From: Bugula neritina
Taxonomy: Eukaryota > Animalia > Bryozoa
Direction of reading: 5' to 3'
Assembly: GCA_964035545.1 (NCBI GenBank)
Contig: OZ037765.1
Span: 34,930,080 to 34,994,079 of the forward strand
DNA: 64,000 nucleotides
In this document: piece after piece, positions 1,264-46,200 of the stretch
Layout of the letters: each line of letters starts with the position of its first letter
How positions within the stretch are numbered: position 1 is the first letter of the stretch
Program-made: the position numbers and the translations under genes
Notes under the pieces: generated by a model
What the model was told of the DNA's origin: nothing
The model's database searches: none
Seen by the model: the letters and a program-made list of their open reading frames with translations, nothing else

Positions 1264-1516
1264 ATGGGTCAACGTAAATCTCTACCTCAGCCTACACCTG
1301 CACCTCGAACTCAGCCTACACCTCCACCTAGACCTGCACCTAGACCTACCCCTGCACCTCGAACTCAGCCTACACCTCCACCTAGACCTGCACCTAGACC
1401 TACCCCTGCACCTCGAACTCAGCCTACACCTCCACCTACCCCTGCACCTAGACCTACCCCTGCACCTCAACCTCCACGTACACCTCGAACTCTACCTACA
1501 CCTCGACTTCCACCAA
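1264..1516 (+). CDS. Gene A first coding exon: MGQRKS plus Pro/Thr/Arg-rich stalk (about 3 x 54-nt repeats, PTPAPRTQPTPPPRPAPR)
   Basis: Acceptor ttgttacag at 1211, in-frame stops upstream of ATG 1264, donor A|gttagt (phase 1); homologous exon at 34242-34392. Confidence 0.7.
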
Positions 1517-4500
1517 GTTAGTAAATCAATAACTTATACACAGTGTGTCAAATTAGTTCTGTAAGAAGTTAGTAAACACTGAGTGAGTTTCGGTGATAAG
1601 CAAAGTTTTACAGGGATTTAGCAATTAAAGTTTCTGTCATCTTGCAGACCATTGTCTTTAATCTTCAATCTACTCAAAGAATAATATTTATGGTCTTAGA
1701 GAACCTGAGTCTAGGATTATGTTATGCCAAGCCAGTTATTATGTATAAAGTGGTGCACACTCTGTAGGGCTGAGAACATCTTGCTGGCTATTCTCTTGAG
1801 TGAATGTCTATAATATCTCATGTCCAACCAATCAGCTTGCTTATTAGCCGCTTTCGGCCAATCACAAACTGACTTCTATAACTCAGCTTTCATTAGGAGT
1901 TGCGCTACTTTGTGTGAAAATATTACATTCATATATATAAACTAAGATTAAAATATTATAACATGTTTTACTGGCAAGTGGTACTACATATAATCAGTTG
2001 AAATAACAAATGCATTTGAAATGTATTTTGGAGTTATATACTCTCTCTTGTTTACTTAAACACTGTTTATAGTGTTGAGACACTCTGTTATTTTGATGTC
2101 AAAGTTATTATTTATAAAATAATGAATATTTTGTAGAGAAGTACGAGGTGTGGTTCAACACATCCAGTATAGATGGAGCTGATGATAAGTGGATGAAGAA
2201 TAGGACTACATACTACACTGTAGAAGAGATCAAGAATAAAAGTAGACATCATACAGTGACTCATGTTATACTGAAGCATGACATTCCTCCAAATATCAAC
2301 ACACTGTTTCCTCATATCACACATCTAGTGGTATTTGAAGTATACAGCAATGCTGACTGGACCAGGTATGATATTGTGTCTAACACATGCCGTATAAGAG
2401 AAGAAAATGAGAATTTCTTGTCAATAGTGACTATTCATATACTGCTAGCTAGTATTTAGTGACTATTCATACTGCTAGCTAGTATTTAGTGACTATTCAT
2501 ACTGCTAGCTAATATTTAGTGACTATTCATACTACTAGCTAGTATTTAGTGACTATTCATACTGTTAGCTAGTATTTAGTGACTATTCATACTGCTAGCT
2601 AGTATTTAGTGACTATTCATACTGCTAGCTAGTATTTAGTGACTATTCATACTGCTAGCTAGTATTTAGTGACTATTCATACTGCTAGCTAGTATTGAGG
2701 TTATCTTTAGAGTTATATTTGTTTTTATATCTGTATGTTATGTTACAGCATATCTTTACTGAAGAATCTTGAGGTATTGAATATATCAGATAATAACCTA
2801 TCTGAAGGTCTACCTGACAATATATTCACATCCTTACTATCATTGACAGAGTTGAACATGGAGTACTGTGTACTGTTAACTCTACCAAACAGGTGTGTAT
2901 TATATTATAGTGTAGAATGATACTGTAATATATATATATAATATCTCATCAGTAACTAAGCAACTGTCTGCATACATAGCAAAGGTTTCTACAGTTACAC
3001 TCAGGTTGAGGATATTCTGTTGAGACTAGAGCTAAGCAGTCAGCGTGTAGGAATTTAAGCATTTTCCATGATATTTTTTTAATTGCATTTTTGTTGGGTA
3101 GAAGGGATAGGATTTCTACTTGATAGCTTACCATGTGTACAGTACTATTTCCTGTGTACTCCGAAGGGTGGTTTGCCTTCTTCCATCTATAAGTACAACA
3201 TGTAATTGGTTGTTAAATGCAAACAAGTCTGACCGTTCTACCTGTCAGGGGCATGAAGTGAATATCTTTCAACCATTGGCTGGTGAGTAATATATCTGTG
3301 CATAACACAGATGTTGCAGGATTTAATTAACTTAGCCATATCTCTACACAGGGCTGTCCACCAGAAGTGGTGCTGAGCCCTCACTCTACACTCATATACC
3401 CCCTGATGGCCCTTGTGGCACATTTCTAAATATCCTGACCGTATAAAGACTAGGGAATATACACCCTGGACTTGTACATTAGCATATTATTATAAGCTGG
3501 TAAATAATGTAGGACTGTATAAAGTTGTGTTAGCCCACCTGTCAAACTCCTACCAATTTTTGGCTGTGGAAATTCTAATATACTTCTATACTGAAAGGGT
3601 CTGAGTTTGTAGTTTTTAGTCCTGTTTCTAATATTTATTATCATAGCACTCACTCTAGCACTCAATACCAACCATATAGATCTCAGGCAGATTAGAATGT
3701 TGCTGTCCTCACCATGTAACAGATCTTTCATATCTGTATGTTATGTTACAGCATATCTTCACTGAAGAATCTTGAGGTATTGAATATATCAGGGAATAAC
3801 CTATCTGAAGGTCTACCTGACAATATATTCGCATCCTTACTATCATTGAGAAATTTGAACATGAATCAATGTAGACTACCAACTCTACCAAACAGGTGTG
3901 TATTATATTATAGTGTAGAATGATACTGTAATATATATAATATCTCATCAGTAACTCAGCAACTGCATGTCTGCATACATAGCAAAAGTTTCTACAGTTA
4001 CACTCAGGTTGAGGATAATCTGTTGAGACTAGAGCTAAGCTGTCAGCTTGTCAGCATTTAAGCATTTTCCATGATAATTTTTTAATTCTGTGTATTTCCC
4101 GCCTGCTTTTAGCTGTTAGTCATCAATGAAAGTGACTTGCATTTGTGTTGGTTAGAAGGGATAGGATTTCTACTTGATAGCTTACCATCTGTACAGTACT
4201 ACTAATTCCTGTGTACTCTGAAACTAGGATATTTCAGATCAGCTATCAGATTTACAAATTGTTAGTTGCTACAGAATTTGGGGTTTAGAGTTCAGACAAT
4301 AGTTTGTATACAAACACTGCACCCCACGACCCCAAGCTTTGTGCTGCATTCATCAATTCCCATCAGATTTTATCCTATGCAGTTGGTGGTTGTTGAGTGC
4401 TGATTGGCTGATTTGTTCTACTTGTATCAAGTGCTGCAAGCCTGAATGTTTTCTCTTTTACTGGAAGATCATTTATTCAGTTTAAAAAGTTACGATTATA

Positions 4501-7500
4501 TAAACATGAAGGCTGGTTGCCTTCTTCCATGTATAAGTACAACATATAATTGGTGGTGGAATGCAAACAAGTCTGACCCTCCCACCTGTCAGGGGCTTGA
4601 AGTGAATTTTTCAACCAATGGTTGGTGAGTAATAGCTCTGTGCATAACACGGATGTTGCAGGATTTAATTAACTTAGCCATATCTCTATACAGAGCTGGC
4701 CACTAGAAGTGGTGCTGAGCCCTCACTCTATAACATTCATATACCCCCTGATGGCCCTTGTGACACATTTCTAAATATCCTGACTGTATAAAGACTATGG
4801 AATGTACACCCTGGGCTTGTACATTAGCATATTATTATAAGCTGGTAAATAATGTAGGACTGTAGAAAGCTGTGTTAGCCCACCTGTCAAACTGCTACCA
4901 TTTTTTGGTCGTGCAAAATCTAATACTTTGATACTGATAGAGTCTGAGTTTGTAGCTTTTAGTCTCGTTTCTAATATTTATTATCATAGCACTCACTCTA
5001 GCACTCAATACCAACCATATGAAACTCAGGCAGGTTAGAATGTTGCTGTCCTCACCATGTAACAGATCTTTCATATCTGTATGTTATGTTACAGCATATC
5101 TTCACTGGAGAATCTTGAGGTATTGAATATATCAAGGAATAACCTCTCTAAAGGACTACCTGACAATATATTCACATCCTTACTATCATTGAAAGAGTTG
5201 AATATGATGAGGTGTAAACTGTCAACTCTACCAAACAGGTGTGTATTATATTATAGTGTAGAATGGTACAGTAATATATATATATATAATAACTCATCAG
5301 TAACTCAGCAACTGTCTGCATACATAGCAAAGGTTTCTACAGTTACACTCAAGTTGAGGATATTCTGTTGAGACTAGAGCTAAGCTATCAGCATGTCAGC
5401 ATTTAAGCATTTTCCATGATAATTTTTTAATTATACATGTATTTTTACCTGCTTTTAGCATTTAGTCATTTAGGGAGACGAATGGTATTTGTGTTTGTTA
5501 GAAGGGATAGGATTTTTACTTGATAGCTTACCATGTGTACAGTACTAATTCCTGTGTACTCTGAAGCTAGGATATTTCAGATCAGCTATCAGATTTACAA
5601 GTTGTTAGATGTTACAGAATTTGGGGTTCAGAGTTCAGTCAATATAGTTTGTATACAGACACTGCACCCCACGACCCCAAGCTTTGTGCTGCATTCATCA
5701 ATTCCCATTAGATTTTATCCCATGCAGTTGGTGGTTGTTGAGTGCTGATTGGCTGAGTTGTTCCACTTGTATCACGTGCTGCAAGGCCGAATGTTTTCTC
5801 TTTTACTGGGAGTTCATCTATTCAGTTTAAAAAATTACAATTATAAACATGAAGGATGGTTTGCTTTCTTCCATCTATAAGTACAACATATATTTGGTTT
5901 TTGAATGCAAACAAGTCTGACCCTTCTACCTGTCAGGGGCTTGAAGTGAATATCTTTCAACCATTGGTTGGTGAGTAATTTCTCTGTGCATAACACAGAT
6001 GTTGCAGGATTTAATTAACTTAGCCATATCTCTACACAGGACTAGCCACCAAAAATGGTGCTGAGTCCTCACTCTACACTCATGTACCCCCTGATGGCCT
6101 TTGTGACACATTTCTAAATATCCTGACTGTAAAGACTAGGGAATATACACCCTGGACTTGTACATCAGCATATTAAAAGCTGCTAAATAATGCTGGACTG
6201 TATAAAGCTGTGTTAGCCCACCTGTCAAACTGCTACCACTTTTGGTCGTGCAAAGTCTATTACGCGGTCTGAGTTTGTAGTTTTTAGTCTTGTTTCTAAT
6301 GGAACTCAGGCATATTAGAATGTTGTTGCCCTCACCATGTAACAGATATTTCATACCTGTATGTTGTGTTACAGCATGTCTTCACTGAAGACTCTTGAGG
6401 TATTGAATATATCTGAAGGTCTACCTGAAAATATATTCACATCCTTACCATCATTGAAAAGGTTGTATATGATGGACTATAAACTGTCAACTCTACCAAA
6501 CAGGTGTGTATTATATTATAGTGTAGAATGATACTGTGATATATATAATATCTCATCAGTAACTCAGTTGCGTTTATACCTCTGCTGAAAAAATTTCCGA
6601 GTTTCAGTTAATAACCCTTGTCTGGGTACCCCTTTATAGTCAAACTGAAAATCGTTGAATTCATATTGATGCGGAAGCACACTTTCTAAAATTGAAATCT
6701 GACTATTTGATGCCCTTTGTAAATATTCTGACGGTAAAGACTAGGGAATATACACCCTGGACTTGTACATTAGCATATTATTTTAAGCTGGTAAATAATG
6801 TAGGACTGTATAAAGCTGTGTTAGCCAACCTATCAAACTGCTACCATTTTCGGCTGTGCAAATTCTATTACTTTTGTACTGATAGGGTCTGAGTTGGTAG
6901 TTTTTAGTCCCGTTTCTAATATTTATTATCATAGCACTCACTCTAGCACTCCATACTAACCATATGAAAGTCAGGCAGATTAGAATGTTGCTGTCCTCAC
7001 CATGTAACAGATATTTCATACCTGTATGTTATGTTACAGCATGTCTTCCCTGAAGAATCTTGAGGTATTGGATATATCAGGGAATAACCTATCTGAAGGT
7101 CTACCTGACAATATATTCACATCCTTACTATCATTGAGAGAGTTGTACATGAGATACTGTGAACTGTCAACTCTACCAAACAGGTATGTATTATATTATA
7201 GTGTAGAATGATGCTGTAATATATATAATATCTCATCAGTAACTCAGCAACTGTCTGCATACATAGCAAAGGTTACTACAGTTACACTCAGGTTGAGGAT
7301 ATTCTGTCAACATTTAAAATTATTCAAAGTTATTCTATAAAACTCATTTGTTAACTGGCATTTTGTAACTTAACCAGTTCTCGGTCTATGATTTGTCTAT
7401 ACAAGAAACTGCTTTCTTTGTTTATTAGAGTTATCTTCCCTCTAATATAACCAACTTTGTCACTCACACTTCTGTTATGTCATATTGGACCTCTGCAGCT

Positions 7501-10500
7501 CAAACCAAACTGTCACACAACTTATTTAAAGTTTCTCCAAATTCTCATTTACTACTTGACTACTAACTGACTCCGTTAGTTCTCAGTCTATGATTTACCA
7601 GATCTTAGGCTATAGAATGAGTTCATACCTGTATGTTATGTTACAGCATGTCTTCACTGAAGAATCTTGAGGTATTTAATATATCAGGGAATAACCTATC
7701 TGAAGGTCTACCTGACAATATATTCACATCCTTACTATCATTGAGAGAGTTGTACATGGAGAGCTGTAAACTGCCAACTCTACCAAACAGGTGTGTATTA
7801 TATTATAGTGTAGAATGATACTGTAACATATATAGTATCTCATCAGTAACTCAGCAACTGTCTGTATACATAGCAAAGGTTACTACAGTTACCCTCAGGT
7901 TGCGGATATTCTGTTAAGACTAGAGCTAAACTGTCAGCATTTAAGCCATTTTCCATGATAATTTTATATTTCTGTGTATTTTCCGCCTGCTTTTAACTGT
8001 CAGTCATCAATGAAAGCGACTTGCATTTTTGTTGGTTAGAAGGGATAGGATTTCTACTTGATAGCTTACCATGTGTACAGTACTAATCCCTGTGTACTCT
8101 GAAGCTAGGATATTTCAGATCAGCTATCAGATTTACAAGTTGTTAGAAGCTACAGAATTTGGGGTTTAGAGTTCAGACAATAGTTTGTATACAAACACTG
8201 CACCCCACGACCCCAAGCTTTGTGCTGCATTCATCAATTCCCATCAGATTTTATCCCATGCAGTTGTTGGTTGTTGAGTGCTGATTGGCTGAGTTGTTCC
8301 ACTTGCATCACGTGCTGCAAGGCCGAATGTTTTCTCTTTTACTGGAAGTTCATCTATTCAGTTTAAAAAATTACAATTATAAACACGAAAGGTGATTTGC
8401 CTTCTTCCATCTATAAGTACAACGTATAATTGGTTGTTGAATGCAAACAAGTCTAACCCTCCTACCCGTCAGGGGCTTGAAGTGAATATCTTTCAACCAT
8501 TGGTTGGTGAGTAATACCTCTGTGCATAACACAGATGTTGCAGGATTGAATTAACTTAGCCATCTCTCTACACAGGACTAGCCACCAGAAGTGGTGCTGA
8601 GCCCTCACTCTACATTCATGTACCCCCTGATGGCCCTTGTAGCACATATCTAAATATCCTGACTGTAAAGATTAGGAAATGTACACCCTGGACTTGTACA
8701 TTAGCATATTAATATAAGCTGGTAAATAATGTAGGACTATATAAAGCTGTGTTAGCCCACCTGTCAAACCGCTACCATTTTTCGGTCGTGCAAATTCTAG
8801 TGCTTTTTTACTGAAAGGGTCTGAGTTTGTAGTTTTTAGTCTCGTTTCTAATATTTATTATCATAGCACTCACTCTAGCACTCAATACCAACCATATGAA
8901 ACTCAGGCAGGTTAGAATGTTGCTGTCCTCACCATGTAACAGATCTTTCATACCTGTATGTTATGTTACAGCATGTCTTCACTGAAGAATCTTGAGGTAT
9001 TGAATATATCATGGAGTAGACTATCTAAAGGTCTACCTGACACTATATTCATATCCTTACTATCATTGAGAGAGTTGAACATGAGGAACTGTAGACTGCC
9101 AACTCTACCAAACAGGTGTGTATTATATTATAGTGTAGAATAATACTGTAATATATATAGTATCTCATCAGTAACTCAGCAACTGTCTGCATACATAGCA
9201 AAGGTTTCTACAGTTACACTCAATTTGAGGATATTCTGTTGAGACTAGAGCTAAGCTGTCAGTAATTTCTATGACGTCACAGCTGCCATAAGGCTTTGGT
9301 TTACTGGTCATAAAATAATTTAAGCTTCATCAGTTTATATATTTGAATTTTTAAAAAATTGGCTCAAAGTTTGGGTATCTAACAAATTTTATCTAGCAAA
9401 AATAGAAGCAGAATAGGTGGTAGTGAAATTATCATTGGACGTCAACAATGACTCAACCATGATTTTTTACACTTTCATTCAGCTGGTAGAATTGAAAATA
9501 AAATTGTTTTCTTTTATGTTCAAGACAAGACAACTGCATAGAAAGGAGTAGTTTTTTAGTCAATTCCATGGAAGAGTAGTGATTTGCACATTTGACAAAG
9601 TTACGTTAGCAGATTTAACTGAATACTGGTATTCATTTTCACCCTTACTTTTGCAAGTTATGTAGATAATACCAAATCTACTTCTAATTAGTCAAGTATT
9701 AGATACTATCCCCAGCTGCAGGCTAGCTATACAATAACTATTTGCAGTGTGCAGCAATATATATATCATTTGGTATAAACAGAAATGATTAGTAAGGTAT
9801 GATTATTAGATTGTGTAAACAATGCATAGAATATACTGTGATATCTGGTAACAACATTTACCAGATGACAACTAAATATATATTTCTATATCAACAAACC
9901 CTGCCTTTGTTTGAACTCTCTATTATTTGTGATGTTTACCAAAGCAGTTCATTCAAAGGTCAAGGACACATTGTTTAACTATAATATATAACTATTTTAT
10001 AACTTTCTATATTACCCAATAATGTAATGAATATATTTGCAATGTTAACTTCTAGACATTATCATTCAACAAAGAGGGTGCTCTTATTTCTGCATGAAGT
10101 CAAATTTTTGATATAAAAGTTATCATGTGATAGTAAAGATGCTTCAACTTGTACTGACAGTGTATAGTGTTCTGTTTACTAGCATACAGAGTCTACAGAA
10201 GTTAGAGGAGCTGGACATATCAGGTAATACCTTCACGAGTTTACCATCTCCTGTGTGCACACTGAGTAGTCTGCAGAAACTGGATATATCCTTCAACCAC
10301 TCCCTGACATCCTTAAATCCTGAGATACTACAGCTAACTCAACTTCATACACTGTATTTAGATCATTGTAATGCTCTCACATCTCCTCCACTAGAAGTAT
10401 GTAAGAGAGGAGTAGATGATGTGAGACAATACTACACAGACTTGGCTAAAGGTGCTGGTAGAAGTCTTCCATTTGCTACTATAGCTGTACTGGGTAATAT

Positions 10501-13500
10501 GATGGCTGGGAAGACCAGTCTAATCAGAACATTACAGAATGCTGACAGAAAGAGAGTTCTGACCAACAGAGGGCCAGATGCTGTGAGAGATGAGACAACA
10601 AAGGTGTTTAATGTTGAAGAAGTGGAGGTGGATGGTACAGTACTCCGTGTCATCGATATGGGAGGCCAGGAGGTCTACCATATCACCTATCAACTGACAC
10701 TGAGACAGAATTGTATTCCAGTCATAGTAGTCAACATGGAACAGTATGAGGAGATCTCAAGTGATTCAACACACAGAGAAGCTGTTAGAAGATTAGCCTT
10801 TGATTACATGTCTCACCTCTACCTGGCTAACCCAACTCTTGGTGCCCCAAAACTTATCTTCACACATAAAGATAAGTTTCAAAGTGCAGAATTCCAAAAG
10901 CTTCAAAAAAATTTCCTTGGAACTTCAAATCAACTGTGTGAGGAGATGATCAGGGAAGAGAAAGCATTGGGTGGACAATTTGCTCAAATCAAACATTTCA
11001 GTGAATCAACTGAAAGAGTCTTTCTTGATGAGGACATTTATGAGGTGGGGAAAGATGATAGGTATGAAGTGTTTGACCAGATCAAGGAGTCTCTTCTTCA
11101 AACCAGTCAACATTTTGTGAAATCTTTACCTCTGGTTTGGGAGGAAGTGAATGAAAAAGTGCTGTCTATTCCCTCTGTGTACAGCACCTTTGATGAGATA
11201 CTGAAATACTTACAAACCGAACTTCAAACCATTGAGTCAAGTCAGCTGGACATCATCCTCACATACATGCATGACTGTGGCAAAGTCTTGTGGTATAAAG
11301 ATATCAGCTCTCTCCAGCCATACGTATTCCATAAGATTTCACAAGTCACCAAACTTCTCTGTGTTTTGTATCATCATGATCCTAACATATGGCAGAGTAG
11401 AGTTGACAAGTTCCAGCCATATTTTTCAGAGGATGGGATGTCTGTTGAAAAAGAAGACTTTGAGAGATTTGTTAATCATTTCACTGAGACTGGTTTGATG
11501 ATGCAATGCCTTCTCACTCATCTGGTTAAACAAGAAACATCATTTACCAGTCTGGAAGACGTAGAAGTTGCTGTGTGCTTGCTTCGCACATTCCGTCTGT
11601 TATATGGTCCTTTACCTGGTGATTCCAAGGAGCCCTGTTTTATTGTTCCCCAGTTTGCTAACGACTTCTTTGATACCTCTTACTCTTCGCCAAAGAATAT
11701 GCTCCTTCGAGTTGAAACTAAATTCAATGGTCTAGCCCTGCCACACTATGTCTATCAGCAGATGAGTGTTGGTTTGTTGGAGTTGTTTCCAGACGAGTTT
11801 GCTGTGGTTAAAGTGAGAAGAAATGGAGCCAATGTCTATCAAGATGGTATCTACACACAGCTGGTACACGACTTTACATCTAGAAAAGTGTCACTCCACG
11901 TGTCATCTACTGCTGCCAACATCAGCAGAATGTGGGAGAGACTCATCACCACCAACAACAACATCCTCAGACATGTCCTAGAAACTTGGACAGCAAGTAG
12001 ACCAGTCACTACATGCTACTGTGCTCACTGTCTTCTGCTAGGACTTCCTTGTCCTAAGAAGGTGATCAATCCTCCGTGGTGTCTTCGCTCTTTGAAACAT
12101 TCCACACCACGTCCCGGACTGTGTAGTGGATCTTCAACAACTCTGTGTGGTTATGAGGAGATACCGAGTGCTCTTCTCTATCCATGTATGTTTGCATTCA
12201 GTTTGAAGTGAATATCTAGTTTTGCTCGCTTTCATCAGTCTTTCTACTATTTATGTTCTGATAGTAATAAACATATAACTTCCATGTGGTAACTGACAAT
12301 GTTTTATTCTCCAGGCAGCCCTCTTTCTTCAGAAGAAGCTGATAACATAAAAAAACGCGTCACCAAACTGAGATCTGCAAGAGAAGAGACTGCTTCAACT
12401 GTCCCTGGTATGATCAGTTTTCTATCATAAACTGTTACTGTTAGAAGTGACATCCTCTGCCTGAGCTCAGTCATATGTAAACAGCAATAGACAAGAACTC
12501 ATTACACTCAGTTATATAGGACAAAATCACTCAGCTTCAATTATTAAATTTGATCTATATAATTACTGATTAAAAGTGGAAAATATGATTCTGTTCCTTG
12601 TTTACAGTTATTTGGATAATTAGTATCTGTTACTTAGCACTGAACATATCTCCTTTTTTGTTTATTTTAGGAATAGGTGAAGATGATAACCTCAGTGAAT
12701 GCTCTGATGTAGAAGAGGAAGGATATGCTGATTTTACTAAAGATGACCTTGAACCTTTTATATTTATGGTTGATGGCATGCAACTGAAACCTACCAACAG
12801 TGAAAGAGTTAAACAGAAGTTTGACAACTACCAGCAGGTAAAACAAATAATATTGTCTCTGACTATTTCCTAAATCATTGAATATTTTTTCAAAAATATT
12901 GGGTTACATCACATAATTTCTAAAAATGTGATTGTTATTCTATTTATCCACTTTTAGTAAGATAAAATTGATTGGTTTACAGGTTTATGCAATGAGTGAC
13001 CCTGTGAGAGGTCGTGTCATGATCATAAACAATGAGAGATTCTTTAGAGATGATGGCAGTGAATTGACTGAGGCAACCCGAGATGGTTCATACATCGACT
13101 ATGTTAACATCAAAACTCTGTTGAAAGACATGGGATTTGTTGTAGCCAATGAAGATGATCCTCTGTTTGACCTGAGTAAACAGGTTACTGTATCAACCTC
13201 TTATCTTTTTGTGTAGTTCCTTCTCCCTAGGGCCTATAGACTGTCACTAGCTATCAAATACTATCCAGTACAGAGATGTATTGTAGTCCAAGAAGTCTAC
13301 ACCGTGTTTACCATGGTGTTCAAATTAATAGTTTTATAATTTTACAATTATAGTGCGTGGGTTTTATTGTGCGTAGCAGGTATCCTCTTCTAGTTAAGCA
13401 ATCACTCGGGTAGTAGCCGGATAATAGTCTTAATTATTTAACTCAAACACAATACAAAACATCACTCTAAATTACAATACAACAATAGCCATATAATACA

Positions 13501-15056
13501 TGCATTCAATCTGAGTCCTCGCTCACGACAGCCTAACTATACGCGGGAACTCTCACTTGCCAAGAGCCCGCCTTCAAGTCCTTCTCACTGGATGGTTTGC
13601 CGTGACCTTTCCCCTATAAATGTGTCCTTTAGTATTCCCCAAACAGAGGGAAGATAATTATACATTATTATATTATGCAAATCCACCACAATAGTTTTTG
13701 TCAGTGTTGATTTTTAGTTTAGCACTACTTAATATTTTACCTTTGTGATAAATATTTCAATATAACTTTGAAGCAGCTTTGGCTTTGGCGTAGACACATT
13801 TACTTATTCAAACTTGTTTATACACACCATTATATACCTTTATTTTGCCAGGAGATATTATCAGAAGTGATGAAGGAGACCACCCACAAAGACCACAAGG
13901 ATCTTGGCATGTTCATTCTAGTCATCATGTCACACGGAACTTCTGGAAACATCTTCCATGACAGACACTGTAAGCCTGTCAACTTGTCAGAAGTCAAAGA
14001 TCTACTCTCAGCTAGTAAATTTCCTGCCATGAGAGGAAAACCCAAACTCATCATCTTCCATGCCTGTTCTGGCAGTGAGTAGTGCAGAGTTGTTCCTCAT
14101 GTTACTAGAACTAGCAGTTAGATTACATTAATTCATGTAACTGTCTCATCAAAATCCTGCAATCTTTTTGACACTGAATCAATGAATATTTGAATGGGTT
14201 TATTTAAGGTAGGCTCCACCTCAAAACCATGTTTTTTGTACATTTTAGTTTTTTGTTTAACTTGGAATTGATTAGTAGTGCTGGTGGTTTCTCCCCACCT
14301 TATTGCAGAGTACATTATATGTATTTTATATACAGGCAGAGCTGACTTTGGTAATGCTGCACAGTCACAAAGCCTAGACACCGTCTCACCACCAACACCA
14401 ACCCCTCTACCCTCATCTTCTGCAACAGCTGGGAGTGAGTCTTCTGCAGGTCAACATGTGTCTCCAAATATTCACTTTGACAGATTCACTCACCTAGATG
14501 CTGATGACTTCTACATTGTGAAGCCAAGTACAGAAAGTTAGTGAGAAGAAAATTATATTTGAGTCGATTTACGCTTTTACAATTTGAATAAATTAAAATA
14601 TTTGTTGCATGTCAATAAAATTGTTGCAAGTTTTGAATATAAAATAATTTACATAATAATTTGACATTCGTATTTAACTGCTCATTTTCATGTGTTGCAG
14701 CTTACAAGGCTGGTAGGAATGAGAATTATGGTACCTGGTTTATCAGAATACTGGTGGCTACATTCTACAGACACAGCTGTCACAGAGATGTTACTGAGCT
14801 GTTTAGGATAGTAAGTAATTCAGTATTACTCTTTGTATGATACTGTGGAGTGTGTTGAGTCATCAGCTTTATATTTCTCTTATATTTATACTTACAGATA
14901 CAAGACAGAGTTAGACGAGTCAGTATTGCATATTGTAAGAAGACAGGAGATGAAGCAGCTGGTGGTAATGTACCTAATTGTCAGGAATGTACTTTCACTC
15001 ACCTCAGAAAACTTTTCTTTTTTCCAAAGTTCCATGGCAGACAACTCCCACAGTGA
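1264..15056 (+). CDS. Gene A: LRR-ROC-COR-caspase (ROCO-caspase fusion), 1543 aa. Exons 1264-1516, 2137-2365, 2749-2892, 3752-3895, 5095-5238, 6375-6503, 7040-7183, 7647-7790, 8972-9115, 10183-12185, 12315-12407, 12671-12837, 12983-13183, 13852-14074, 14336-14536, 14701-14810, 14898-15056
   Basis: All junctions GT-AG and phase-compatible; summed CDS 4632 nt, open to TGA at 15054-15056. LRR consensus; ROC motifs GNMMAGKTS, DMGGQE, THKD; caspase motifs RGRVMIINN, MSHG, FHACSG, GTWFI, LRKLFFFP. Exon structure mirrored in gene B. Confidence 0.85.
2137..2365 (+). CDS. Gene A exon 2, putative LRR N-cap
   Basis: ttgtag| acceptor, AG|gtatga donor, phase 1 to 2; 229-nt paralog at 34920-35148. Confidence 0.8.
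2427..2697. repeat. 30-bp intronic minisatellite (ctgctagctagtatttagtgactattcata), about 9 copies
   Basis: Tandem units seen directly; same unit expanded at 35310-36305. Confidence 0.95.
2749..2892 (+). CDS. Gene A LRR cassette exon A1 (144 nt, 2 LRRs, phase 2-2)
   Basis: tgttacag|C ATA...CCA AAC AG|gtgtgt; [47 protein letters not shown]. Confidence 0.9.
3752..3895 (+). CDS. Gene A LRR cassette exon A2
   Basis: Same splice signals; ...NISGNN...LRNLNMNQCRLPTLPN. Confidence 0.9.
5095..5238 (+). CDS. Gene A LRR cassette exon A3
   Basis: Same splice signals; ...NISRNN...LKELNMMRCKLSTLPN. Confidence 0.9.
6375..6503 (+). CDS. Gene A LRR cassette exon A4 (129 nt, in-frame 15-nt deletion; absent from the ORF track)
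   Basis: tgttacag|C ATG...AAC AG|gtgtgt; MSSLKTLEVLNIS-----EGLPENIFTSLPSLKRLYMMDYKLSTLPN. Confidence 0.75.
7040..7183 (+). CDS. Gene A LRR cassette exon A5
   Basis: Same splice signals; ...DISGNN...[16 protein letters not shown]. Confidence 0.9.
7647..7790 (+). CDS. Gene A LRR cassette exon A6
   Basis: Same splice signals; ...NISGNN...LRELYMESCKLPTLPN. Confidence 0.9.
8972..9115 (+). CDS. Gene A LRR cassette exon A7
   Basis: Same splice signals; ...NISWSR...LRELNMRNCRLPTLPN. Confidence 0.9.
10183..12185 (+). CDS. Gene A large exon: 3 LRRs + ROC GTPase + COR (MFHAS1-like ROCO core)
   Basis: 2003-nt exon within ORF 10127-12211; P-loop GNMMAGKTS, G3 DMGGQEVY, G4 THKD, COR-like [15 protein letters not shown]-terminal CAHC cysteine cluster. 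Confidence 0.92.
12983..15056 (+). CDS. Gene A caspase (peptidase C14A) domain over 5 exons
   Basis: VYAMSDPVRGRVMIINNERF, TRDGSYID, ILVIMSHG (catalytic His), GKPKLIIFHACSG (catalytic Cys), DADDFYIV, YKAGRNENYGTWFI, TFTHLRKLFFFP. Confidence 0.9.
13354..13690 (-). mobile_element. Solo LTR in a gene A caspase intron
   Basis: TG...CA ends, exact 4-bp TSD ATAG (13350-13353 / 13691-13694), shares cgcgggaactctca with the LTR at 32726-33108. Confidence 0.8.
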
Positions 15057-15989
15057 ATGACGTCTGCAGCACATCACGTGTTCACATGCAGCAGACACAG
15101 ACCTGCCATATTAGCTAGATACTTGCAGCTGCTAGACAGACCTGTCATGTCTTTGATTTTATACAATCATTTCTAATTTTATTAGTTTATATATTTTTCA
15201 TGTACCTGTGATTTAAGAAGAAATGTGAGTTACCACATCCACTTTTTATTCATTTTGCATGCTAAACAACATAACTTCTTTGTGTGTTTTTGCCCATTTG
15301 CTTTCACTGAATTTATAGACACTTTCACATATTATGTGCATAGAAGTTTATTCAGCTGTAAAACCTGATTGAAATCTGTTGAATTAATTTAAACATGTTT
15401 ATGGGGTTTCATGCTTAGCCCCAATTATCTATGTTATTTCTGCACTTTTATCTCATTACCATCTATTCAACATATTATTCTTAGGATGTAGAGAAACCAT
15501 TGCATATGCCTTAGTAAATATAATTGATTTGAAGAATTGTCTCTACTTGAGATTAGATGATTCAGTAACCAGTGAGTAAGCTAAGTAGTAAAGAAGAGCA
15601 AGTGTATCTTTGTTTACTGGTTGCTAAGTGATATACTAGTAGTTGGATTCCATCATGGGAAGGTTGGGGAGGGAATAACTCTAAAATACTCCAAATCTGT
15701 AATATAAGTCATTTAGTCAGTCTGTTAATAGCCATATCACTGAATGAATCTAGAAGTTTCCATAAAGTTGATTGAAGCAGAATAAAGTACGAGTGTATTG
15801 CTAGGATGAGGTGACTTCCCAAGGAGTAGGACTTTAATAAATATATTTTATAAAATTAACTAATTTAATAGAAAACAACAAAGGAGATGAAGCAAATAAT
15901 ATTGAAACAGTAACTTAGCAGTATAATAGTGTATGCAGGCTATATTGTTAGTAGAGTAACTTGACACACAGAACACGGGTGGTCTGCCA

Positions 15990-34241: not shown

Positions 34242-37200
34242 ATGGGTCAACGTAAATCTCTACCTCAGCCTACACCTACACTTAGACATAGTCCTAGACC
34301 TACCCCTGCACCTCGAACTCTACCAACACCTACACCTAGATCTCGACCTCCACCTCCACCTCCACCTCCACCTCCACCTCCACCCCCACTAAGTTAGTAA
34401 ATCAATAACTTATACACAGTGTGTCAAATTAATTCTGTAAGAAGTTAGTAAACACTGAGTGAGTTTCAGTGATAAGGAAAGTTTTACTGGTTGTGTTCAG
34501 TAACCAAAGTTTCTGTCATCTCACAGCTACAGTACATCTTCTGTATATAAAATAGTGAACAGCTTGTGGTGTGAGTTTGTGTTGTAAACAATAATATCTC
34601 ATGTCCAACCAATCAGCTTGCTTATTAGGTGCTTTCAGCCAATCACAAACTGACTTCTATAACTCAGCTTCCATTAGGAGATGCGCTACTTTGTGTGAAA
34701 ATTAGTATTACATTCATCTATATAAACTAAGATTGAAATATTATAACACGTTTTACTGGCAAGTGGTACTATATATAATCAGTTGAAGTTTCAACTGCAT
34801 TTGAAATGTATTTTGGAGTTATAAACTCTCCACGTTTACTTCAATACTGTTTATAGTGTTGAGACACTCTGTTATTTGATGTCAAAGTTATTATTTATAA
34901 AGTGGTGAATATTTTATAGAGGAGTACTGGATGTGGTTCAACACATCCAGTATAGATGGAGCTGATGATAAGTGGATAAAGAATGATACTACATCCTACA
35001 CTATAGAAGAGATCAAGAAGAAAAGTAGACATCACACAGTGACTCATGTTGTACTGAAGCATGACATTCCTCCAAATATCAACACACTGTTTCCTCATCT
35101 CACACATCTAAGGTTATCTGAAGTATACAGCAATGCTGACTGGACCAGGTATGATATTGTGTCTAACACATCCAGTATAAGAGAAAAAACTGAGAATTTT
35201 TTGTTAGTGGTGGAGTTTGAACCTTTACAGTAGTAAATACCCCCCTATCCACTTTACCAGCAGACTATACTTAAATATTAAGTGAATACACACTACACAG
35301 AGTACTCCCACCTATTCACACTGCTAGCTAGTATTTAGTGACTATTCATACTGCTAGCTAGTATTTAGTGACTATTCATACTGTTAGCTAGTATTTAGTG
35401 ACTATTCATACTGCTAACTAGTATTTAGTGACTATTCATACTGCTAGCTAGTATTTAGTGACTATTCATACTGCTAGCTAGTATTTAGTGACTATTCATA
35501 CTGTTAGCTAGTATTTAGTGACTATTCATACTGCTAACTAGTATTTAGTGACTATTCATACTGCTAGCTAGTATTTAGTGACTATTCATACTGCTAGCTA
35601 GTATTTAGTGACTATTCATACTGCTAGCTAGTATTTAGTGACTATTCATACTGCTAGCTAGTATTTAGTGACTATTCATACTGCTAACTAGTATTTAGTG
35701 ACTATTCATACTGCTAGCTAGTATTTAGTGACTATTCATACTGCCAGCTAGTATTTAGTGACTATTCATACTGCCAACTAGTATTTAGTGACTATTCATA
35801 CTGCCAGCTAGTATTTAGTGACTATTCATACTGCCAACTAGTATTTAGTGACTATTCATACTGCTAGCTAGTGTTTAGTGACTATTCATACTGTTAGCTA
35901 GTATTTAGTGACTATTCATACTGCTAGCTAGTATTTAGTGACTATTCATACTGCTAGCTAGTAATTAGTGACTATTCATACTGCTAGCTAGTATTTAGTG
36001 ACTATTCACACTGCTAGCTTGTATTTAATGACTATTCATACTGTTAGCTAGTATTTAGTGACTATTCATACTGATAGCTAGTATTTAGTGACTTTTTTTA
36101 CTGCTAGCTAGTATTTAGTGACTATTCATACTGCTAGCTGGTGTTTAGTGACTATTCATACTGTTAGCTAGTATTTAGTGACTATTCATACTGCTAGCTA
36201 GTATTTAGTGACTATTCATACTGCTAGCTAGTATTTAGTGACTATTCATACTGCTAGCTAGTATTTAGTGACTATTCATACTGCTAGCTAGTATTTAGTG
36301 ACTATGTAAACTGTGAATTCTACCAAACAGGTATGTATTATATTATAGTGTAGAATGATACTGTAATATATAATTATTGTGATAGTTTTGTGGGTTATGA
36401 ATGAAACTAGTGCTTTACATGCTTGTTATGAGAAACAAGGCGAGAAATAAGGTAAAAGGTAAGGTAGCTTTATTGTAGTCCGAATGATCCAGTAGTCTGT
36501 GTCCAGCGAGCTCCAGTAGTAGACTGAATCTACACTGAAACTCGCTGGCTTTTATATACACACAGGACAAAGACACTCCTTTGTTTGCCGAGATCGGAGG
36601 CCCGAAATGCCGAATATCGGCACTTCGGGAATCCGAAATGCCGAATTGGCATCTCGGCACTTCGGTAGTCCGATATGCCGAAAATCGGCATATCGGTGTT
36701 TCGGAGGACCGAAGTGCCGATCTCGGCAACCAAGGACACACACACAACATAAATTTACCACACACACCCCCATCGGAAAGCATGCTTTCTGATAAAGAGA
36801 CGTACACAAACATCAATCACACAAACAGAATATGACACGACAATAAAACACACAGTTGACAAGTAACACACAAAAAAAAACAATATACGGTAGCCATGCA
36901 GTGATACCAAAAAAAAAACAAAGAGAATTGTGCACACATAAAAATAACAGAGCAACGGATAAGTACATAACACTACATGAAAGAATTTACACACACATAA
37001 AAAGAGCAAAGAAAATAAGATCAAGAAAAAAAACAAATATACAAACAGTCTCATCGGCGGTCTCCAGATCGGCCCCGCTACAGGCAGCTCACACGTCTCC
37101 TGAGTTGTCCCAACTCCTCCTCGTACCTGCGGAGCCGCCTGCGTAAGTGTTGTACCTTTTCCTCCAACTGGGCCGATGTCTGGTGTCTGGGGCGGTCGGT

Positions 37201-40200
37201 GGTACTGTGGCTGGTACGTCGCCTCTGCTTCTCGCCGGCCGCCGAGGGCCGGGGGCCCAGGTCCGATGAATCGGTCCTGGCGCCTGATCCGACCCGTGCC
37301 AGCACGACCCGAAGTGGTTGGGTGGCTGCCGGTTGGGGTGTCGCGGCAGGCTCCCCTTCTTCTTCACGAACAGGCCTACACACGGGGAATCCCAGGGCGA
37401 GAGCAGCCCGTTTATGGGGATCGGCCACGTGTGGCAGTACCAGATCCCAAAATTCGGGAAAGGAGGCCTGGTCTACAGCGAACGTGTAGCTCGTGTGGCA
37501 GTGAGCTATGCGCTGATGCCTCAGCACATAGTCCCTCTGGTAAGAGATTTTGCCACATGGGCAAAGCAGGTTGATGTAGTGCTGTGGGGCGTGTACACGC
37601 AACCGCCGTGCAGAGGAGAACTTCCTCTGGCACTGGTGGCAGATGCGGTTGCCCGGCTCACCGCAAGCTTCACCAATCCTAAGATTGGTGGGTCCAGTCA
37701 CCCAATACTGGCGGGCGACCAGGACCCGAGGCAGGGCCAGTATTGGGGAGTCATCTTCTTCGGCTGCGAGGTGGTCGCCGTGTAGGATGCCCTGCTCCTT
37801 CCCGGCCGTGAGCTGAAGCTCGACCGGTTTGGGGTCAGGGCCACTAACGATGGCGGAACACACCTCTGTGGAGGAGGTGACGTCCTGCTGGCTGTGAGAA
37901 GCCGAAGCAGGAGCCGGTGGGAAAGGGGAGTCGGACTGACTGGCCTCCTCGGTGTCCATACGCTCCTCTAGAACAGATAGTAGAGGCTGTGATAAGCCGG
38001 TCTCACTATCGCCGAAATTCGGCATAGGTGTGTATGGGGCCAAATTAAAAACCGGGGGCCAAGGGGTATCGCAGAAATTGACTGAGCCCACGTCATGATT
38101 CAATAAAGTATCAATGACACAGTCATCTCCGAGATCCATCTCGGCCTCCGGTTCTAAGTAATCAGACCCAAGTAAGTCTAATAAAGACCAGTCTACACTA
38201 GTTTGACTAGACTCCGTAACTGGAGGATCTAATCTAAATGAAATACCTGATTGCGTGTCTGGTAAAGTAATTCTCATAGCTGCTGATAGCGTCTGGAGAA
38301 CAGTATTTAAATCAAACTTGGGGGTATCAGGATCAGAATTCAACTTAAGCTGTAACTGACGTGCTAGCTGGGTGAAATCAGAACTAGAAATGGCCGAACC
38401 TCGTGCTTCAGAATTATTACCTGCCAAAGCCCGAGTCGCGTGGCCCGTGGGAATTTCCACCGGATTTCGAAAAGACAACTCGCGTGATCGAATGTCTTCC
38501 AAAATTCGGTCGGCCATTTCTTCTTCTTGGTGGAATTCTCCAGGGTGATGGAGGGAATTTCCAACCAAGATTAGGTGGTCGTCAGTACGGGGGGGTTGTC
38601 CTCATGAGGGGGCCACTCTAGGTGCCCTACAGCATAGTCTGCCAGATACCTGGGGGGTCTTCTTGATCGCTGGCTCCTCTCAATTGGAGCAGGCACCGGT
38701 GGTGTTCGTGGCTCCTGAGCTACCCTAGTAGGGGGATCTCCGCCTTCACCCAACACGGGGGTGGGGGTGTCCTCCTTCAGGGAGGGTGGTGGTCCTAGGG
38801 CTTGCTGCTGTTCCTGTTCCCGCTCCTCTCTCTGCTGTCGCTCTAGCTGCTCTATCAAGGCGGCCTGCTCCTGGTCTGCCTCTCTAGGAACCATAATTTC
38901 CACCTCTCGGGGCTGGGTGGCCCGTCCTCGACGGTTGGGCTGGCGGTGGGGCTCCAGGAGGGGTGGAGCCTGACCCACCGCGTCTGGGCTAGCATGATAA
39001 GGTTTCAGGCGCTGCTCGCTCTAGACGGAGATTTGTCCAGAGCGCTCCACACGGTACGTGTGGTTGGGCAGCACCTTCACTACGCAGTAGGGACCGACGA
39101 ACTTGGGCTGAAGCTTAGCCGACTGTCCGCCTCGCCTACGGTAGCTCACCATCCAGACCCAGTCTCCCACCTGGTACAACGGGGGCTCTTTTGAGTCCTC
39201 TGTGCAGGTCTGCCACTGCTGGGTACGCAGCGCACCGTGAGCTTTGCCCATGATGTCTATCAGACCCTCCACATATTCGTGTACCGGTGACTCGGGGGCA
39301 GGAACATGGTATGTCAGGTGTTCCGGGACCCGCGTCTCTCGGCCTAGCATCAAGAAGTTTGGAGTCTCCTGCGTGGCGGAGTGTGGTGTGCCACGGTAAG
39401 CCCGCATGATTTGCGGCAGCACCACGTCCCATTTTTCCTGACCTCGACCAAGGAGCAGGCTCCTGAGCGCGTCACCCAACATCCTGTTGTTCCGCTCGAC
39501 GACTTCGTTCCCTTGCGGGTGATATGGGGTGGTCCGACTCTGGTTCACCCCCCATATCCGGCAGAGGTCTCCCATGAGCTGGGACTGGAACTGGGCACCC
39601 TGGTCCGTATGTATCTGCTTGGGCAAACCAAGGTAACAGAAAACATGTTGGTCCAGGGTCCGGGGCAACGTGGGGGCGGTTGCGTCTGAAATAGCCAGAG
39701 CATCCGCCCACCGGGTAAAGTGGTCCGTGAGCACCAGTATTCAGGTGTTCCCTCTGGCGGATAACGGCATAGGCCTGACGAGGTCTACCGCCACTACTTG
39801 CCACGGTCGTTCAGCGTACAGCCGGCGTCGACCAGTGGTTTCCGTGGGGCGGCCATGCTTGCTAGCTTGGCAGACCTCGCATTGCCGTACCCGCAGTCGT
39901 ACGTCCCGAGTCATTCCAGGCCAATACCAACGCAGCCGCAGACACCTGATGACTCGACTGACTCCAGAATGAGCCTGCTTATGGGTGTCCCAGATCAGTT
40001 CCCGCCGGAGGGCGCGTGGACAGACGACGCGGTCCCGCTCCTGCTGACGGTTGTCCGCTGCTAACGTTATCATCAGGAGGCCATCAGGACTGACCTTGAG
40101 GGCATCCCAGCGACGACAGAGGAGTTGGAACTCAACACCTCCCTGCCGCTGCTGTTCCTTGCTAGGTCGTCGGCCCTCCTTCTTGGCCCGGAAGATGTCC

Positions 40201-43200: not shown

Positions 43201-46200
43201 AGCTGTCACATTTCTAAATATCCTGACCTTGTAAAGACTAGGGAATATGCACCTCGGACTTGTACATTAGCATATTATTATAAGCTGGTAAATAATGTAG
43301 GACTGTATAAAGCTGTGTTAGCCCACCTGTCAAACTGCTACCATTTTTTGGTCGTGCAAATTCTATTACTTTGATACTGATAGGGTCTGAGTTGGTAGTT
43401 TTTAGTCTCGTTTCTAATATTTCTTATCATAGAGGTTAGTAGTCTCTCTGATAGAACTTACATATGACTCAATGTCACCATTTGATTCCTCACACTGCTT
43501 GCAATGTGGGTAGACCTACTCAGTGTCTCAGCTATGAACATGTCTTTGCCATTTCTTCACCTTTATCAGTGTCCTCCTCTCCCTAGATAATATCTCTTGG
43601 TTCTCACAGTGAATATATATCTCTGTTTCTTGAGCTCACTCTAGCACTCAATACCAACCATATGAAACTCAGGCAGAGTAGAATGTTGCTGTCCTCACCA
43701 TGTAACAGATCTTTCATACCTGTATGTTGTGTTACAGCATATCTTCACTGAAGAATCTTGAGGTATTGGATATATCATTGAATAAGCTATCTGAAGGTCT
43801 CCCGGACAATATATTCACATCCCTACTATCATTGAGAGAGTTATACATGTGGTACTGTGAACTGTCAACTCTACCAAACAGGTGTGTATTATATTATAGT
43901 GTAGAATAATACTGTAATAAATATAATATCTCATCAGTAACTCAGCAACTGTCTGCATACATAGCAAAGGTTTCTACAGTTACACTCAAGTTGAGGATAT
44001 TCTGTTGAGACTAGAGCTAAGCTGTCAGCAATTTCTATGGCATCACAGCTGCCATAAGGCTTTGGTTTACTGGTCATAAAATAATTTAAGCTTTCGTTAG
44101 TTTCTGTATTTGAATTTTTTAAAAATTAGCTCAAAGTTTGGGTATCTAATGAATTTAATCTAGCAAGAAGAGAAGCAGAATAAGTGGTAGTTAAATTATC
44201 ATTGGGCGTCAACACTGACTTAACCATGTTTTTTTACACTTTCATTCAGCTGGTAGAATTGAAAACACAATTGTTTTTTTTTGTTCAAGGCAAGACAACT
44301 TTGCATAGAAAGGAGTAGATTTTTAGTCAATTTCATGGAAGAGTAGTGATTTACACATTTGACAAAGTTATGTTAGCAGATTTAACTAAATACTGGTATT
44401 CATTTCACCCTTACTATTGTAAGTTATGTAGATAATACCAAATCTAATTCTAATTAGTCGAGTATTAGATATACTACCCAGCTGCAGGCTAGGATAGCTA
44501 TACAATAACTATTTGCAGTGTGCAGCTATATGTATGTGGTGTAAACAGAAATGATTATTAAGATATGATTATTAGATTTTGTGAACAATGCATAGAGTAC
44601 TGTGATATCTAGTGACAACATTTACCAGACGACAACAAAATATATAATTTTTATATCAACAAACCCTGCCTTTATTTGAACTCTCTATTTTTTGTGATGT
44701 TTACCAAAGCAGTTCATTCAAAGGTCAAGGATACATTCTTTAACTATAATATATAGTCATTTTATAACTTTCTATATTACCCATTAATGTAATGAATATA
44801 TTTGCAATGTTAACTTCTAGACATTATCACTCAACAAAGAAGGTGCTCTTATTTCTGCATAAAATCAAATTTTTGATATAAAAGTTATCATGTGATAATA
44901 AAGATGCTTCAACTTGTACTGACAGTGTATAGTGTTCTATTTACTAGCATACAGAGTCTACAGAAGTTGGAACAACTGAGCATATCAGATAATAACTTCA
45001 CCAATTTACCATCTCCTGTGTACACACTGAGTAGTCTGCAGAAACTGGATATATCTCATAATGTGTTCCTGACATCCTTAGATCCTGAGATACTACAGCT
45101 AACTCAACTTCATAGACTGAATGTTGATTTTTGTATAGCTCTCACATCTCCTCCACTAGAAATATGTAAGAGAGGAGTGGATGCTGTGAGACAATACTAC
45201 ACAGACTTGGCTAAAGGAGCTGGTAGAAGTCTACCATTTGCTACTATAGCTGTGCTGGGTAATACGATGGCTGGGAAGACCAGTCTAATCAAAACATTAC
45301 AGAATGCTGACAGAAAGAGAGTTCTGACTAACAGAGGGCCAAATGCTGTGAAAGATGAAACAACAAAGGTGTTTAATGTTGAAGAAGTGGAGGTGGACAG
45401 TACAGTACTCCGTGTCATTGATATGGGAGGCCAGGAGGTCTACCATATCACCTATCAACTGACACTGAGACAGAATTGTATTCCAGTCATAGTGGTCAAC
45501 ATGGAACAGTATGAGGAGATTTCAAGTAAATCAACACACAGAGAAGCTGTTAGAAGATTAGCCTTTGATTACATGTCTCACCTCTATCTGGCTAACCCAG
45601 CTCTGGGTGCTCCAAAACTTATCTTCACACATAAAGATAAGTTTCAAAATGGGGAATTTCAGAAGCTCCGAAAGAACTTTCTAGAAACTTCCAATCAGCT
45701 GTGTGAGGAGATGATTAAAGAAGAGAAAGCATTGGGAGGAGAATTTGCTCAAATCAAATATTTCAGTGAATCAACTGAAGGAGTCTTTCATGGTGAGGAC
45801 ATTTATGAGGTGGGGAAAGATGATAAGTATGAAGTGTTTGACCTGATCAAGGAGTGTCTTCTTCGAAGCAGTCAACATTTTGTGAAACCTTTACCTCTGG
45901 TCTGGGAGGAAGTGAATGAAAAAGTGCTGTCTATTCCCTCTGTTTACAGCACCTTTGATGAGATACTGAAATACGTGCAAACAGAACATCAACACATTGA
46001 GTCAAGTCAGCTGGACATAATCCTCACATATATGCATGACTGCGGCAAAGTCTTGTGGTATAAAGATATCAGCTCTCTCCGGCCATACATATTTCACAAA
46101 ATTTCACAAGTCACCAAACTTCTTTGTGTCTTGTATCATCATGATCCTAACATATGGCAGAGTAGAGTTGACAAGTTCCAGCCATACTTTTCAAATGATG

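Follow-up and report, generated by a model that had tools for sequence, protein, structure and literature searches.

The closest working analogue of the bryozoan array described here is the HNWD family of Podospora anserina (het-d, het-e, het-r; PMC1805685, PMC2873952). As here, its repeats are homogenised within and between loci, vary in number, include chimeric repeats derived from unequal crossover and carry a few selected positions each, which fall into two patches. HNWD proteins are likewise tied to a cell-death effector, but they combine WD40 repeats with a NACHT (STAND) NTPase instead of leucine-rich repeats (LRRs) with Roc-COR. The bryozoan repeat, unlike that of HNWD, is an exon and therefore the recombining unit contains an intron. 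Function and somatic instability have been demonstrated in Podospora only, while the bryozoan family is known from sequence. The order LRR-Roc-COR is shared with the LRR-ROCO genes of the brown algae Ectocarpus and Saccharina (PMC3341825, PMC11378527), which likewise possess tandem symmetric phase-2 LRR exons in varying number and positive selection on the concave face. Splice variants have been reported for the algal genes (PMC11378527) and an immune role has been proposed, but not demonstrated (PMC3341825, PMC11378527). Their exon unit encodes one LRR of 24 aa (72 nt) rather than two LRRs (144 nt) and they contain inverted and dead intronic LRR exons, whereas none is inverted here; the C-terminal caspase fusion and the animal host are further differences. 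The exon-shuffled LRR-ROCO design is thus common to both groups, apparently reached independently.

In vertebrate NLRP genes (PMC6642158), too, each frame-preserving exon has a fixed border and holds two LRRs, and skipping is possible, but these exons are 171 nt long, of the ribonuclease-inhibitor type and part of a NACHT receptor. Lamprey VLRs (PMC3308329) resemble the present genes in having LRR modules whose concave face varies. However, a germline VLR gene is incomplete until it is filled in somatically with sequence from donor cassettes, which flank it by the hundreds and lie in either orientation (PMC3308329), while the bryozoan gene is complete and the cassettes are its own exons. The cassette principle as such is already known. 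A literature search for studies of a bryozoan ROCO-caspase family found none, and no characterised bryozoan immune or non-self receptors were found in the literature library searched.

The window, i.e. the whole 64-kb stretch of DNA that was analysed, contains two such genes, designated A and B, with exon-intron structures as predicted from the DNA letters:

1264..1516, plus strand: first coding exon of gene A, starting with MGQRKS followed by a Pro-rich repeat
2137..2365, plus strand: exon 2 of gene A, phase 1-2, which probably encodes the LRR arm's N-terminal cap
2425..2696, no strand: minisatellite with nine copies of 30 nt in the intron preceding cassette 1 of gene A
2749..2892, plus strand: cassette A1, 144 nt, two LRRs, phase 2-2
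3752..3895, plus strand: cassette A2, 144 nt
5095..5238, plus strand: cassette A3, 144 nt
6375..6503, plus strand: cassette A4, 129 nt, structurally damaged
7040..7183, plus strand: cassette A5, 144 nt
7647..7790, plus strand: cassette A6, 144 nt
8972..9115, plus strand: cassette A7, 144 nt
10183..12185, plus strand: exon of gene A for the last LRRs, the Roc GTPase and COR, 2,003 nt, phase 2-1
12315..12837, plus strand: two linker exons of gene A (12315-12407, 12671-12837)
12983..15057, plus strand: five exons that encode the caspase domain of gene A, including the catalytic His (SHG) and Cys (HACSG)
34242..35148, plus strand: first coding exon and exon 2 of gene B
36305..36330, plus strand: what is left of gene B's destroyed first cassette, namely its last 26 nt and donor
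36400..41780 (ends approximate), minus strand: broken Ty3/gypsy-type retroelement inside the cassette array of gene B
42314-42457, 42919-43062 and 43738-43881, plus strand: three intact gene B cassettes, 144 nt each
44948..46950, plus strand: LRR-Roc-COR exon of gene B, 92% identical to its gene A counterpart
47659..55899, plus strand: caspase exons of gene B, of another type than those of gene A

The model of gene A comprises 17 exons with a complete open frame of 1,543 aa and the architecture LRR-Roc-COR-caspase. Its Roc exon exhibits the P-loop, DxxG and xxKD motifs (G1, G3, G4) and the GTPase domain was matched by PF08477 with 30.5 and 33.3 bits (cut-off 27). COR-A (PF16095) scored below cut-off (E 0.005), albeit at the expected place after Roc, and homologues carry PF16095. 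The caspase domain (Peptidase C14) was matched by PF00656 with 40 bits. The His-Cys dyad of Peptidase C14 is present in the p20-p10 domain of both predicted enzymes: gene A has SHG and HACSG, gene B has THG and EVCSG. The two caspases share about 45% aa identity; the small-subunit exons of gene B lie at about 55316-55420 and 55780-55899. The MGQRKS start, which is retained in nine further paralogue matches, fits the N-myristoylation pattern MGxxxS.

The cassette exons are genuine: the copies, introns included, are 85-94% identical, far beyond what chance would give. The first-pass annotation had described seven cassettes in A and three in B, all phase 2-2 and 144 nt long. Number and phase are confirmed, except that only six of the seven gene A cassettes measure 144 nt and that gene B retains, besides its three intact cassettes, the remnant of a fourth, which is fused to the minisatellite (33 copies in gene B). 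An in-frame 15-nt deletion cost the first LRR of cassette A4 its Asn-ladder turn, and the second LRR carries a Cys-to-Tyr change. Every gene A and B cassette scores as LRR in Pfam. As also stated before, all ten are bordered by ttacag|C and AACAG|gt, so that the junction codon AG|C encodes Ser at each border. Phase is matched at both ends of the array (exon 2 donor 2365, Roc exon acceptor 10183) and all 128 possible cassette subsets of gene A leave the frame open through to the natural stop. Thus, the frame indeed permits the 2^7 combinations calculated earlier, but this figure is not an isoform count. Moreover, five of the seven gene A cassettes have an extra AG 29 nt upstream of the acceptor, use of which would shift the frame; the claim that any subset is frame-safe accordingly holds only if the correct AG is chosen. 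The uniform splice sites and the common Ser junction, previously interpreted as a special modular feature, reflect no special design: introns were copied along with the exons, at 85-97% identity, and all cassettes arose recently from a single unit of exon plus intron. LRR exons that preserve the frame are also widespread, for instance in human NLRs (PMC6642158) and in brown-algal ROCOs (PMC11378527).

Gene A belongs to a large LRR-Roc-COR-caspase family of bryozoans. Comparison of paralogues, exclusively plus-strand genes, supports the reading that the LRR arm is receptor-like and was diversified by germline shuffling, as had been proposed. In 11 paralogues with fully visible arrays the number of cassettes varies from 2 to 9; two sister genes possess 9 and 8 cassettes, respectively, while a third gene with the same first cassette has 2. 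The six array introns of gene A find their best matches in introns 7, 4, 4, 8, 6 and 4 of a neighbour gene 75 kb upstream, i.e. in scrambled order, and the gene A-type intron block is present at at least 80% identity in four adjacent genes only. Two clean unequal-crossover chimeras were detected in a paralogue on contig 5, in which the middle cassettes take their 5' half from the next and their 3' half from the previous exon and are flanked by introns that are 99.8-100% identical. This pattern was observed in two or three of seven triples with twin introns, none of them within gene A. Silent divergence from gene A was lower in the cassette framework than in the Roc exon start in 14 of 14 genes, a comparison based on only about 45 silent sites per gene. 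The cassette tree is star-like and the gene A cassettes never cluster together. With the intron matches and the silent divergence, this shows concerted evolution within and between loci. Gene B lost one cassette with its frame preserved. A PHI-type recombination test was not significant, probably due to local homoplasy from hypervariable codons. No inverted cassette copies were found in 16 gene regions, where only two remnants turned up, and a metagenome scan with the cassette alignment returned one irrelevant locus. An assembly artefact could be ruled out, as divergence between the copies is 5-15% and six such cassettes are also present on a metagenome contig of independent origin.

Replacement changes concentrate on the arm's concave face. 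Among 65 cassettes, dN at 12 concave positions picked from the LRR motif was 0.37 as compared to a dS of 0.086, i.e. a ratio of 4.3 (bootstrap 2.0-10), whereas dN/dS was 0.55 outside these positions and 0.30 in the Roc exon; such pairwise ratios are a rough measure where recombination occurs. In 19 non-overlapping recent unit pairs, 14.2% of the concave codons differed, but only 3.1% of intron positions and 2.4% of the other codons, and the codon differences comprised 102 replacement versus 13 silent changes. In a modelled Watersipora homologue the strands coincide with the variable positions. Concave-face residues are under positive selection, set in a homogenised framework. As a separate point, the low dS of the cassettes might in part result from splicing constraints.

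The exon layout is old. Proteins of Watersipora subatra and Bugula neritina, annotated automatically as MFHAS1 homologues (e.g. XP_067940460.1, XP_067935483.1), share with gene A the cap exon homologous to exon 2, the two-LRR exons, the 2.0-kb Roc-COR exon and the caspase. Their cassette exons measure 138-141 nt, are phase 2-2 and are in the same register as those of gene A, which argues for the age of the two-LRR phase 2-2 layout. They differ in comprising 47 or 46 instead of 48 codons and in a junction residue that is Arg, Ser, Thr or Trp, and identity is about 30-40%.

Taken together, we assign a probability of about 0.72 to the reading that the array is the germline-diversified, ligand-facing arm of a member of this family. 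The comparisons indicate that a single ancestral two-LRR phase 2-2 exon was copied repeatedly along with its intron, and that cassettes are gained, lost, reordered and homogenised through misaligned recombination between copies, either within one gene or across tandem neighbours. Crossover in the constant middle of the exon joins the first variable patch of one cassette to the second patch of another, and selection favours new residues at about eight positions on or just after the two beta-strands. Owing to phase symmetry, such duplications, losses and reorderings can survive. Array polymorphism between haplotypes would be expected, and in most transcripts every intact cassette is presumably present; a degree of skipping is likely, though it would not be the engine. 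The protein would be cytoplasmic and membrane-tethered. Its ligand would be foreign or non-self and quick to change; when bound by the LRR arm, it may shift the dimer state of Roc-COR, which in turn may activate the attached caspase. The product of gene A is a probable immune or cell-death receptor.

The strongest competitor, though an improbable one, is that combinatorial exon skipping adds many cassette-subset isoforms per gene to the germline change. All subsets keep the frame, damaged A4 still sits in an otherwise intact gene, and the RefSeq models of two Watersipora genes omit an intact-looking cassette. Precedents are reported for brown-algal ROCO genes (PMC11378527) and for human NLRP3, which has one major skipped form (PMC6642158); this form, however, lost activity and added no specificities (PMC6642158). 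Against it, donors are near-consensus and 73 of 73 near-full cassettes retain an open frame and AG/GT sites, which fits regular inclusion, Watersipora LRR-bearing homologues are listed with one isoform each (a weak point), and skipping merely rearranges near-identical scaffolds without making new residues. A 9-nt element 5' of the acceptors can pair with the donor of its own cassette, and for A4 and A6 such pairing is predicted to be highly probable, but it was marginal versus shuffles and the element is missing from Watersipora and Bugula cassettes. It was hence rejected as a family-wide skipping switch. The first-pass annotation had cited arthropod Dscam for splicing-based diversity. For Dscam-like mutual exclusion with competing RNA pairings we found no support: no strong inverted repeat occurs within the array, the one candidate pairing is the marginal one just described, and with introns of 463-1,199 nt there is no steric obstacle to joining neighbouring cassettes.

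Clearly less probable still is somatic recombination or templated copying among cassettes, whether under a programme like that of lamprey VLRs or spontaneously as happens in Podospora hnwd genes, by which zooids or cells of one colony would differ. The many direct repeats of 85-100% identity provide substrates for mitotic recombination, repeat arrays in Podospora undergo rearrangement in vegetative growth (PMC2873952), and the genome contains one AID/APOBEC-like deaminase match (PF18778, 46 bits). Yet nothing is missing from the germline gene, its cassettes are without exception spliceable internal exons, none of them inverted, and inherited events account for everything observed. No RSS was found at the locus, and the genome gave no match to the PF08210 deaminase or to RAG1, for which the search control was likewise silent. 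AID-type hypermutation was rejected, because differences among cassettes track codon position and are free of C/G or WRC bias. Outside donor cassettes of the VLR type were not encountered either in a genome-wide census that scored 40 of 199 candidates: all cassettes observed lie 5' of a Roc exon in gene orientation and with splice sites. The VLR-like assembly considered earlier is thus not supported and appears to be contradicted by the anatomy of gene A. Near-neutral repeat turnover, in which the array grows and decays by recombination without a recognition role, could explain damaged A4, the ruined cassette and retroelement in gene B, the minisatellite turnover and the richness of the region in elements, but is very unlikely and largely refuted by concave replacement change that is 4-5 times as frequent as silent or intron change in both the dN/dS and the recent unit pair comparisons, by the conserved cassette framework and Roc exon, and by retention of the architecture in Watersipora and Bugula.

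The germline-diversified family bears genetic marks of receptors, namely expansion, repeat exchange, chimeric modules and selection on the binding face, and it would wire a recognition arm directly to a caspase within one cytoplasmic protein. It is a speculative prospect that a NACHT-poor colonial animal diversifies such sensor-switch-caspase receptors inside the colony, by skipping or by mitotic unequal recombination; if true, within-colony diversity of the arm would give individuals a repertoire for immunity or allorecognition, in an animal that is neither a vertebrate nor an arthropod. These genes provide loci for asking how a colonial invertebrate recognises pathogens and non-kin, and whether clonal colonies vary inside.

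Scanning the window for acceptor and donor motifs detected ten plus-strand cassettes, of which gene A holds seven and gene B three. The array is real and well formed: each cassette is preceded by ttacag, starts with C and ends with AACAG followed by gt, the introns are uniformly in phase 2, and every cassette joint regenerates a Ser codon split as AG/C. The relevant features are:

1264-1516, plus strand, first coding exon of gene A
2137-2365, plus strand, exon 2 of gene A, probable LRR N-cap
2749-9115, plus strand, gene A cassettes A1 to A7
6375-6503, plus strand, fourth cassette (A4)
7647-7790, plus strand, sixth cassette (A6)
10183-12185, plus strand, Roc exon of gene A
36305-36330, plus strand, cassette remnant in gene B

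The first-pass annotation had described these exons as phase 2-2 cassettes with like splice sites, which holds, and as uniformly 144 nt long, which does not: six of the seven gene A cassettes have this length, while a 15-nt in-frame deletion has shortened A4 to 129 nt, and A4 also carries Tyr in place of a conserved Cys. The phases of exon 2 and of the Roc exon fit those of the cassettes, and the gene A model (17 exons, GT-AG introns only) is stop-free over 1,543 aa. As had been predicted, the frame survives any loss or skipping of cassettes, all 128 of the 128 gene A subsets being open through to the natural stop. In gene B, 26 nt and the donor of a further cassette are left, with a minisatellite and a disrupted Ty3/gypsy element alongside; this gene formerly had at least four cassettes. 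The same 30-nt minisatellite follows exon 2 in both genes (A, 9 copies, 2425-2696; B, 33 copies, 35312-36305, abutting the destroyed cassette), but no other retrieved paralogue region carries it. Broken or partial Ty3/gypsy-type elements with RT, RNase H, integrase and protease matches lie at 22000-25700, 29900-32700, 36400-41800, 51200-52700 and 58600-64000, two of them within gene B introns.

The 2,003-nt Roc exon downstream of the gene A array encodes more LRRs, a Roc GTPase that passes the Pfam threshold and, by a weak match, a putative COR domain; later exons encode a caspase domain with both His and Cys at their expected positions. Since the N-terminus MGQRKS matches the myristoylation pattern and a signal peptide is absent, the protein is probably cytoplasmic and membrane-tethered. 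In the first coding exon, this possible myristoylation site is followed by a Pro-rich repeat of a few to about 80 residues across paralogues. Among named homologues, the closest come from two bryozoans, Bugula neritina and Watersipora subatra, pointing to a cheilostome bryozoan as the most likely host. The genome contains at least 66 related Roc exons, about twenty of them at most 1.2 Mb from the window, and one partial NACHT match, a lower bound given the exon-wise search. Literature searches found no published study of a bryozoan LRR-Roc-COR-caspase family.

The repeating unit comprises exon plus intron, with intron-to-intron matches of 85-97%. Exon and intron are thus copied together, and the like acceptors, donors and Ser junctions stem from common descent; for a cassette duplication to survive, the phase must be symmetric. 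Frame-preserving LRR exons are common, as exemplified by the 171-nt two-LRR exon of human NLRPs (PMC6642158) and the 72-nt phase-2 single-LRR exon of brown-algal ROCOs (PMC11378527). Among bryozoans the layout is old: 138- or 141-nt phase 2-2 two-LRR exons in the same register also precede a Roc exon in five genes of Watersipora and one of Bugula.

Germline shuffling, which had been proposed earlier, is borne out by variable cassette number, out-of-order intron matches, chimeric cassettes and concerted evolution, as assessed in 73 near-full cassettes from A, B and 14 paralogue regions. In the 11 genes with fully seen arrays, cassettes number 2 to 9; two sister genes share cassettes at matching positions but number 9 and 8, and a third gene that begins with the same cassette contains just 2. 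The six introns of gene A find their best matches in introns 7, 4, 4, 8, 6 and 4 of a neighbour 75 kb upstream, and at 80% or more this intron block is restricted to four adjacent genes. In a paralogue on contig 5, two cassettes flanked by introns 100% and 99.8% identical each combine the 5' half of the next exon with the 3' half of the previous one, which is the signature of unequal crossover in the constant mid-exon. New repeats in Podospora hnwd mutants are likewise chimeras from unequal crossover (PMC2873952). Pooled over seven twin-intron triples, the bias is 21:12 vs 11:25 (Fisher p 0.008, with non-independent sites and two or three triples driving it); the remaining 29 triples show no bias. 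At silent sites, the cassette framework is nearer to A than the Roc exon start is in 14/14 genes, and the cassette tree is star-like, gene A cassettes never clustering together, which argues for concerted evolution.

Effector modules also appear to have been swapped between sensor lineages. Among 30 genes, 14 carry the A-type caspase (72-96%) and 16 another type (34-47%), unrelated to Roc identity (rho 0.19). A and B share 92% identity in the Roc-COR exon, whereas their caspases are of different types (about 45% aa; 12185-15057 vs 46950-55899); conversely, a 96% A-like caspase accompanies a Roc exon of 69% in one gene, and a metagenome contig (L022) repeats this pattern. The long gene B intron between the large- and small-subunit caspase exons contains 36-nt and 14-nt satellites (52810-53923, 54344-55300), and another metagenome contig (L029) holds a similar satellite.

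Variation among 65 cassettes (62 distinct) is concentrated at positions 11, 14, 16, 34, 36, 38, 39 and 41. At 12 concave positions picked from the LRR motif, rough pairwise estimates under recombination gave dN 0.37 and dS 0.086 (ratio 4.3, bootstrap 2.0-10) vs a dN/dS of about 0.55 elsewhere in the cassette. Nineteen non-overlapping recent unit pairs differ by 3.1% in introns, 14.2% in concave codons and 2.4% in other codons. In a modelled Watersipora homologue, which resembles SHOC2 and leptospiral LRR solenoids, both strands of each cassette sit at variable positions. These codon comparisons demonstrate diversifying selection on cassettes in the inherited genome. Exon 2 differs between A and B mainly by replacements (pN 0.095, pS 0.025, few sites) and may be under selection too.

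That exon skipping among cassettes is the main source of diversity seems unlikely, though the indirect signs are mixed. Frame and canonical sites are kept in 73/73 cassettes, pointing to regular inclusion. In favour of some skipping, the damaged A4 is still present, and RefSeq models of two Watersipora genes lack an intact-looking cassette, possibly through annotation noise (of three cassettes left out, L026:35355-35495, L030:4919-5059 and L030:12945-13085, two have intact splice sites and one a mutated donor). A 9-nt element spanning roughly -23 to -15 relative to each acceptor (e.g. 7017-7025) is complementary to the donor of its own cassette, with strong predicted pairing only in A4 and A6; however, it was noticed post hoc, shows a marginal excess over shuffles and overlaps the probable branch point, and the Watersipora and Bugula cassettes lack it. 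No Dscam-like RNA pairing system was found in the array. A second AG lies 29 nt upstream of the acceptor in 5/7 A and 2/3 B cassettes (2720-2748 and equivalents); its use would yield a 173-nt frameshifting exon and possibly unproductive splicing.

Somatic assembly, also suggested previously, is not supported: in the germline, lamprey VLR genes are incomplete, and donor cassettes that flank them in both orientations supply the missing parts (PMC3308329), whereas gene A is complete and its cassettes are its exons, none inverted. Rearrangement in body cells as a means of receptor diversification is improbable, for although the genome has one AID/APOBEC-like match (PF18778, 46 bits, G000:C3:14308235-14308645), cassette variation shows no C/G or WRC bias and tracks codon position; no RSS was found, nor a RAG1 match in a search lacking a working control. 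On the single assembly compared, spontaneous mitotic recombination of cassettes, as in Podospora, is conceivable though improbable.

Inherited shuffling under selection operates as follows: cassettes with their introns are copied, exchanged and joined as chimeras in the germline, and diversifying selection acts on the products. Caspases are activated by dimerisation. Considering also the dimer cycles of Roco proteins (PMC6337361), ligand binding at the LRR arm might shift the Roc-COR dimer state and thereby switch on the caspase. The cassette array is a newly recognised animal version of an already known diversification strategy, and the LRR arm would likely serve pathogen sensing or colony non-self recognition.
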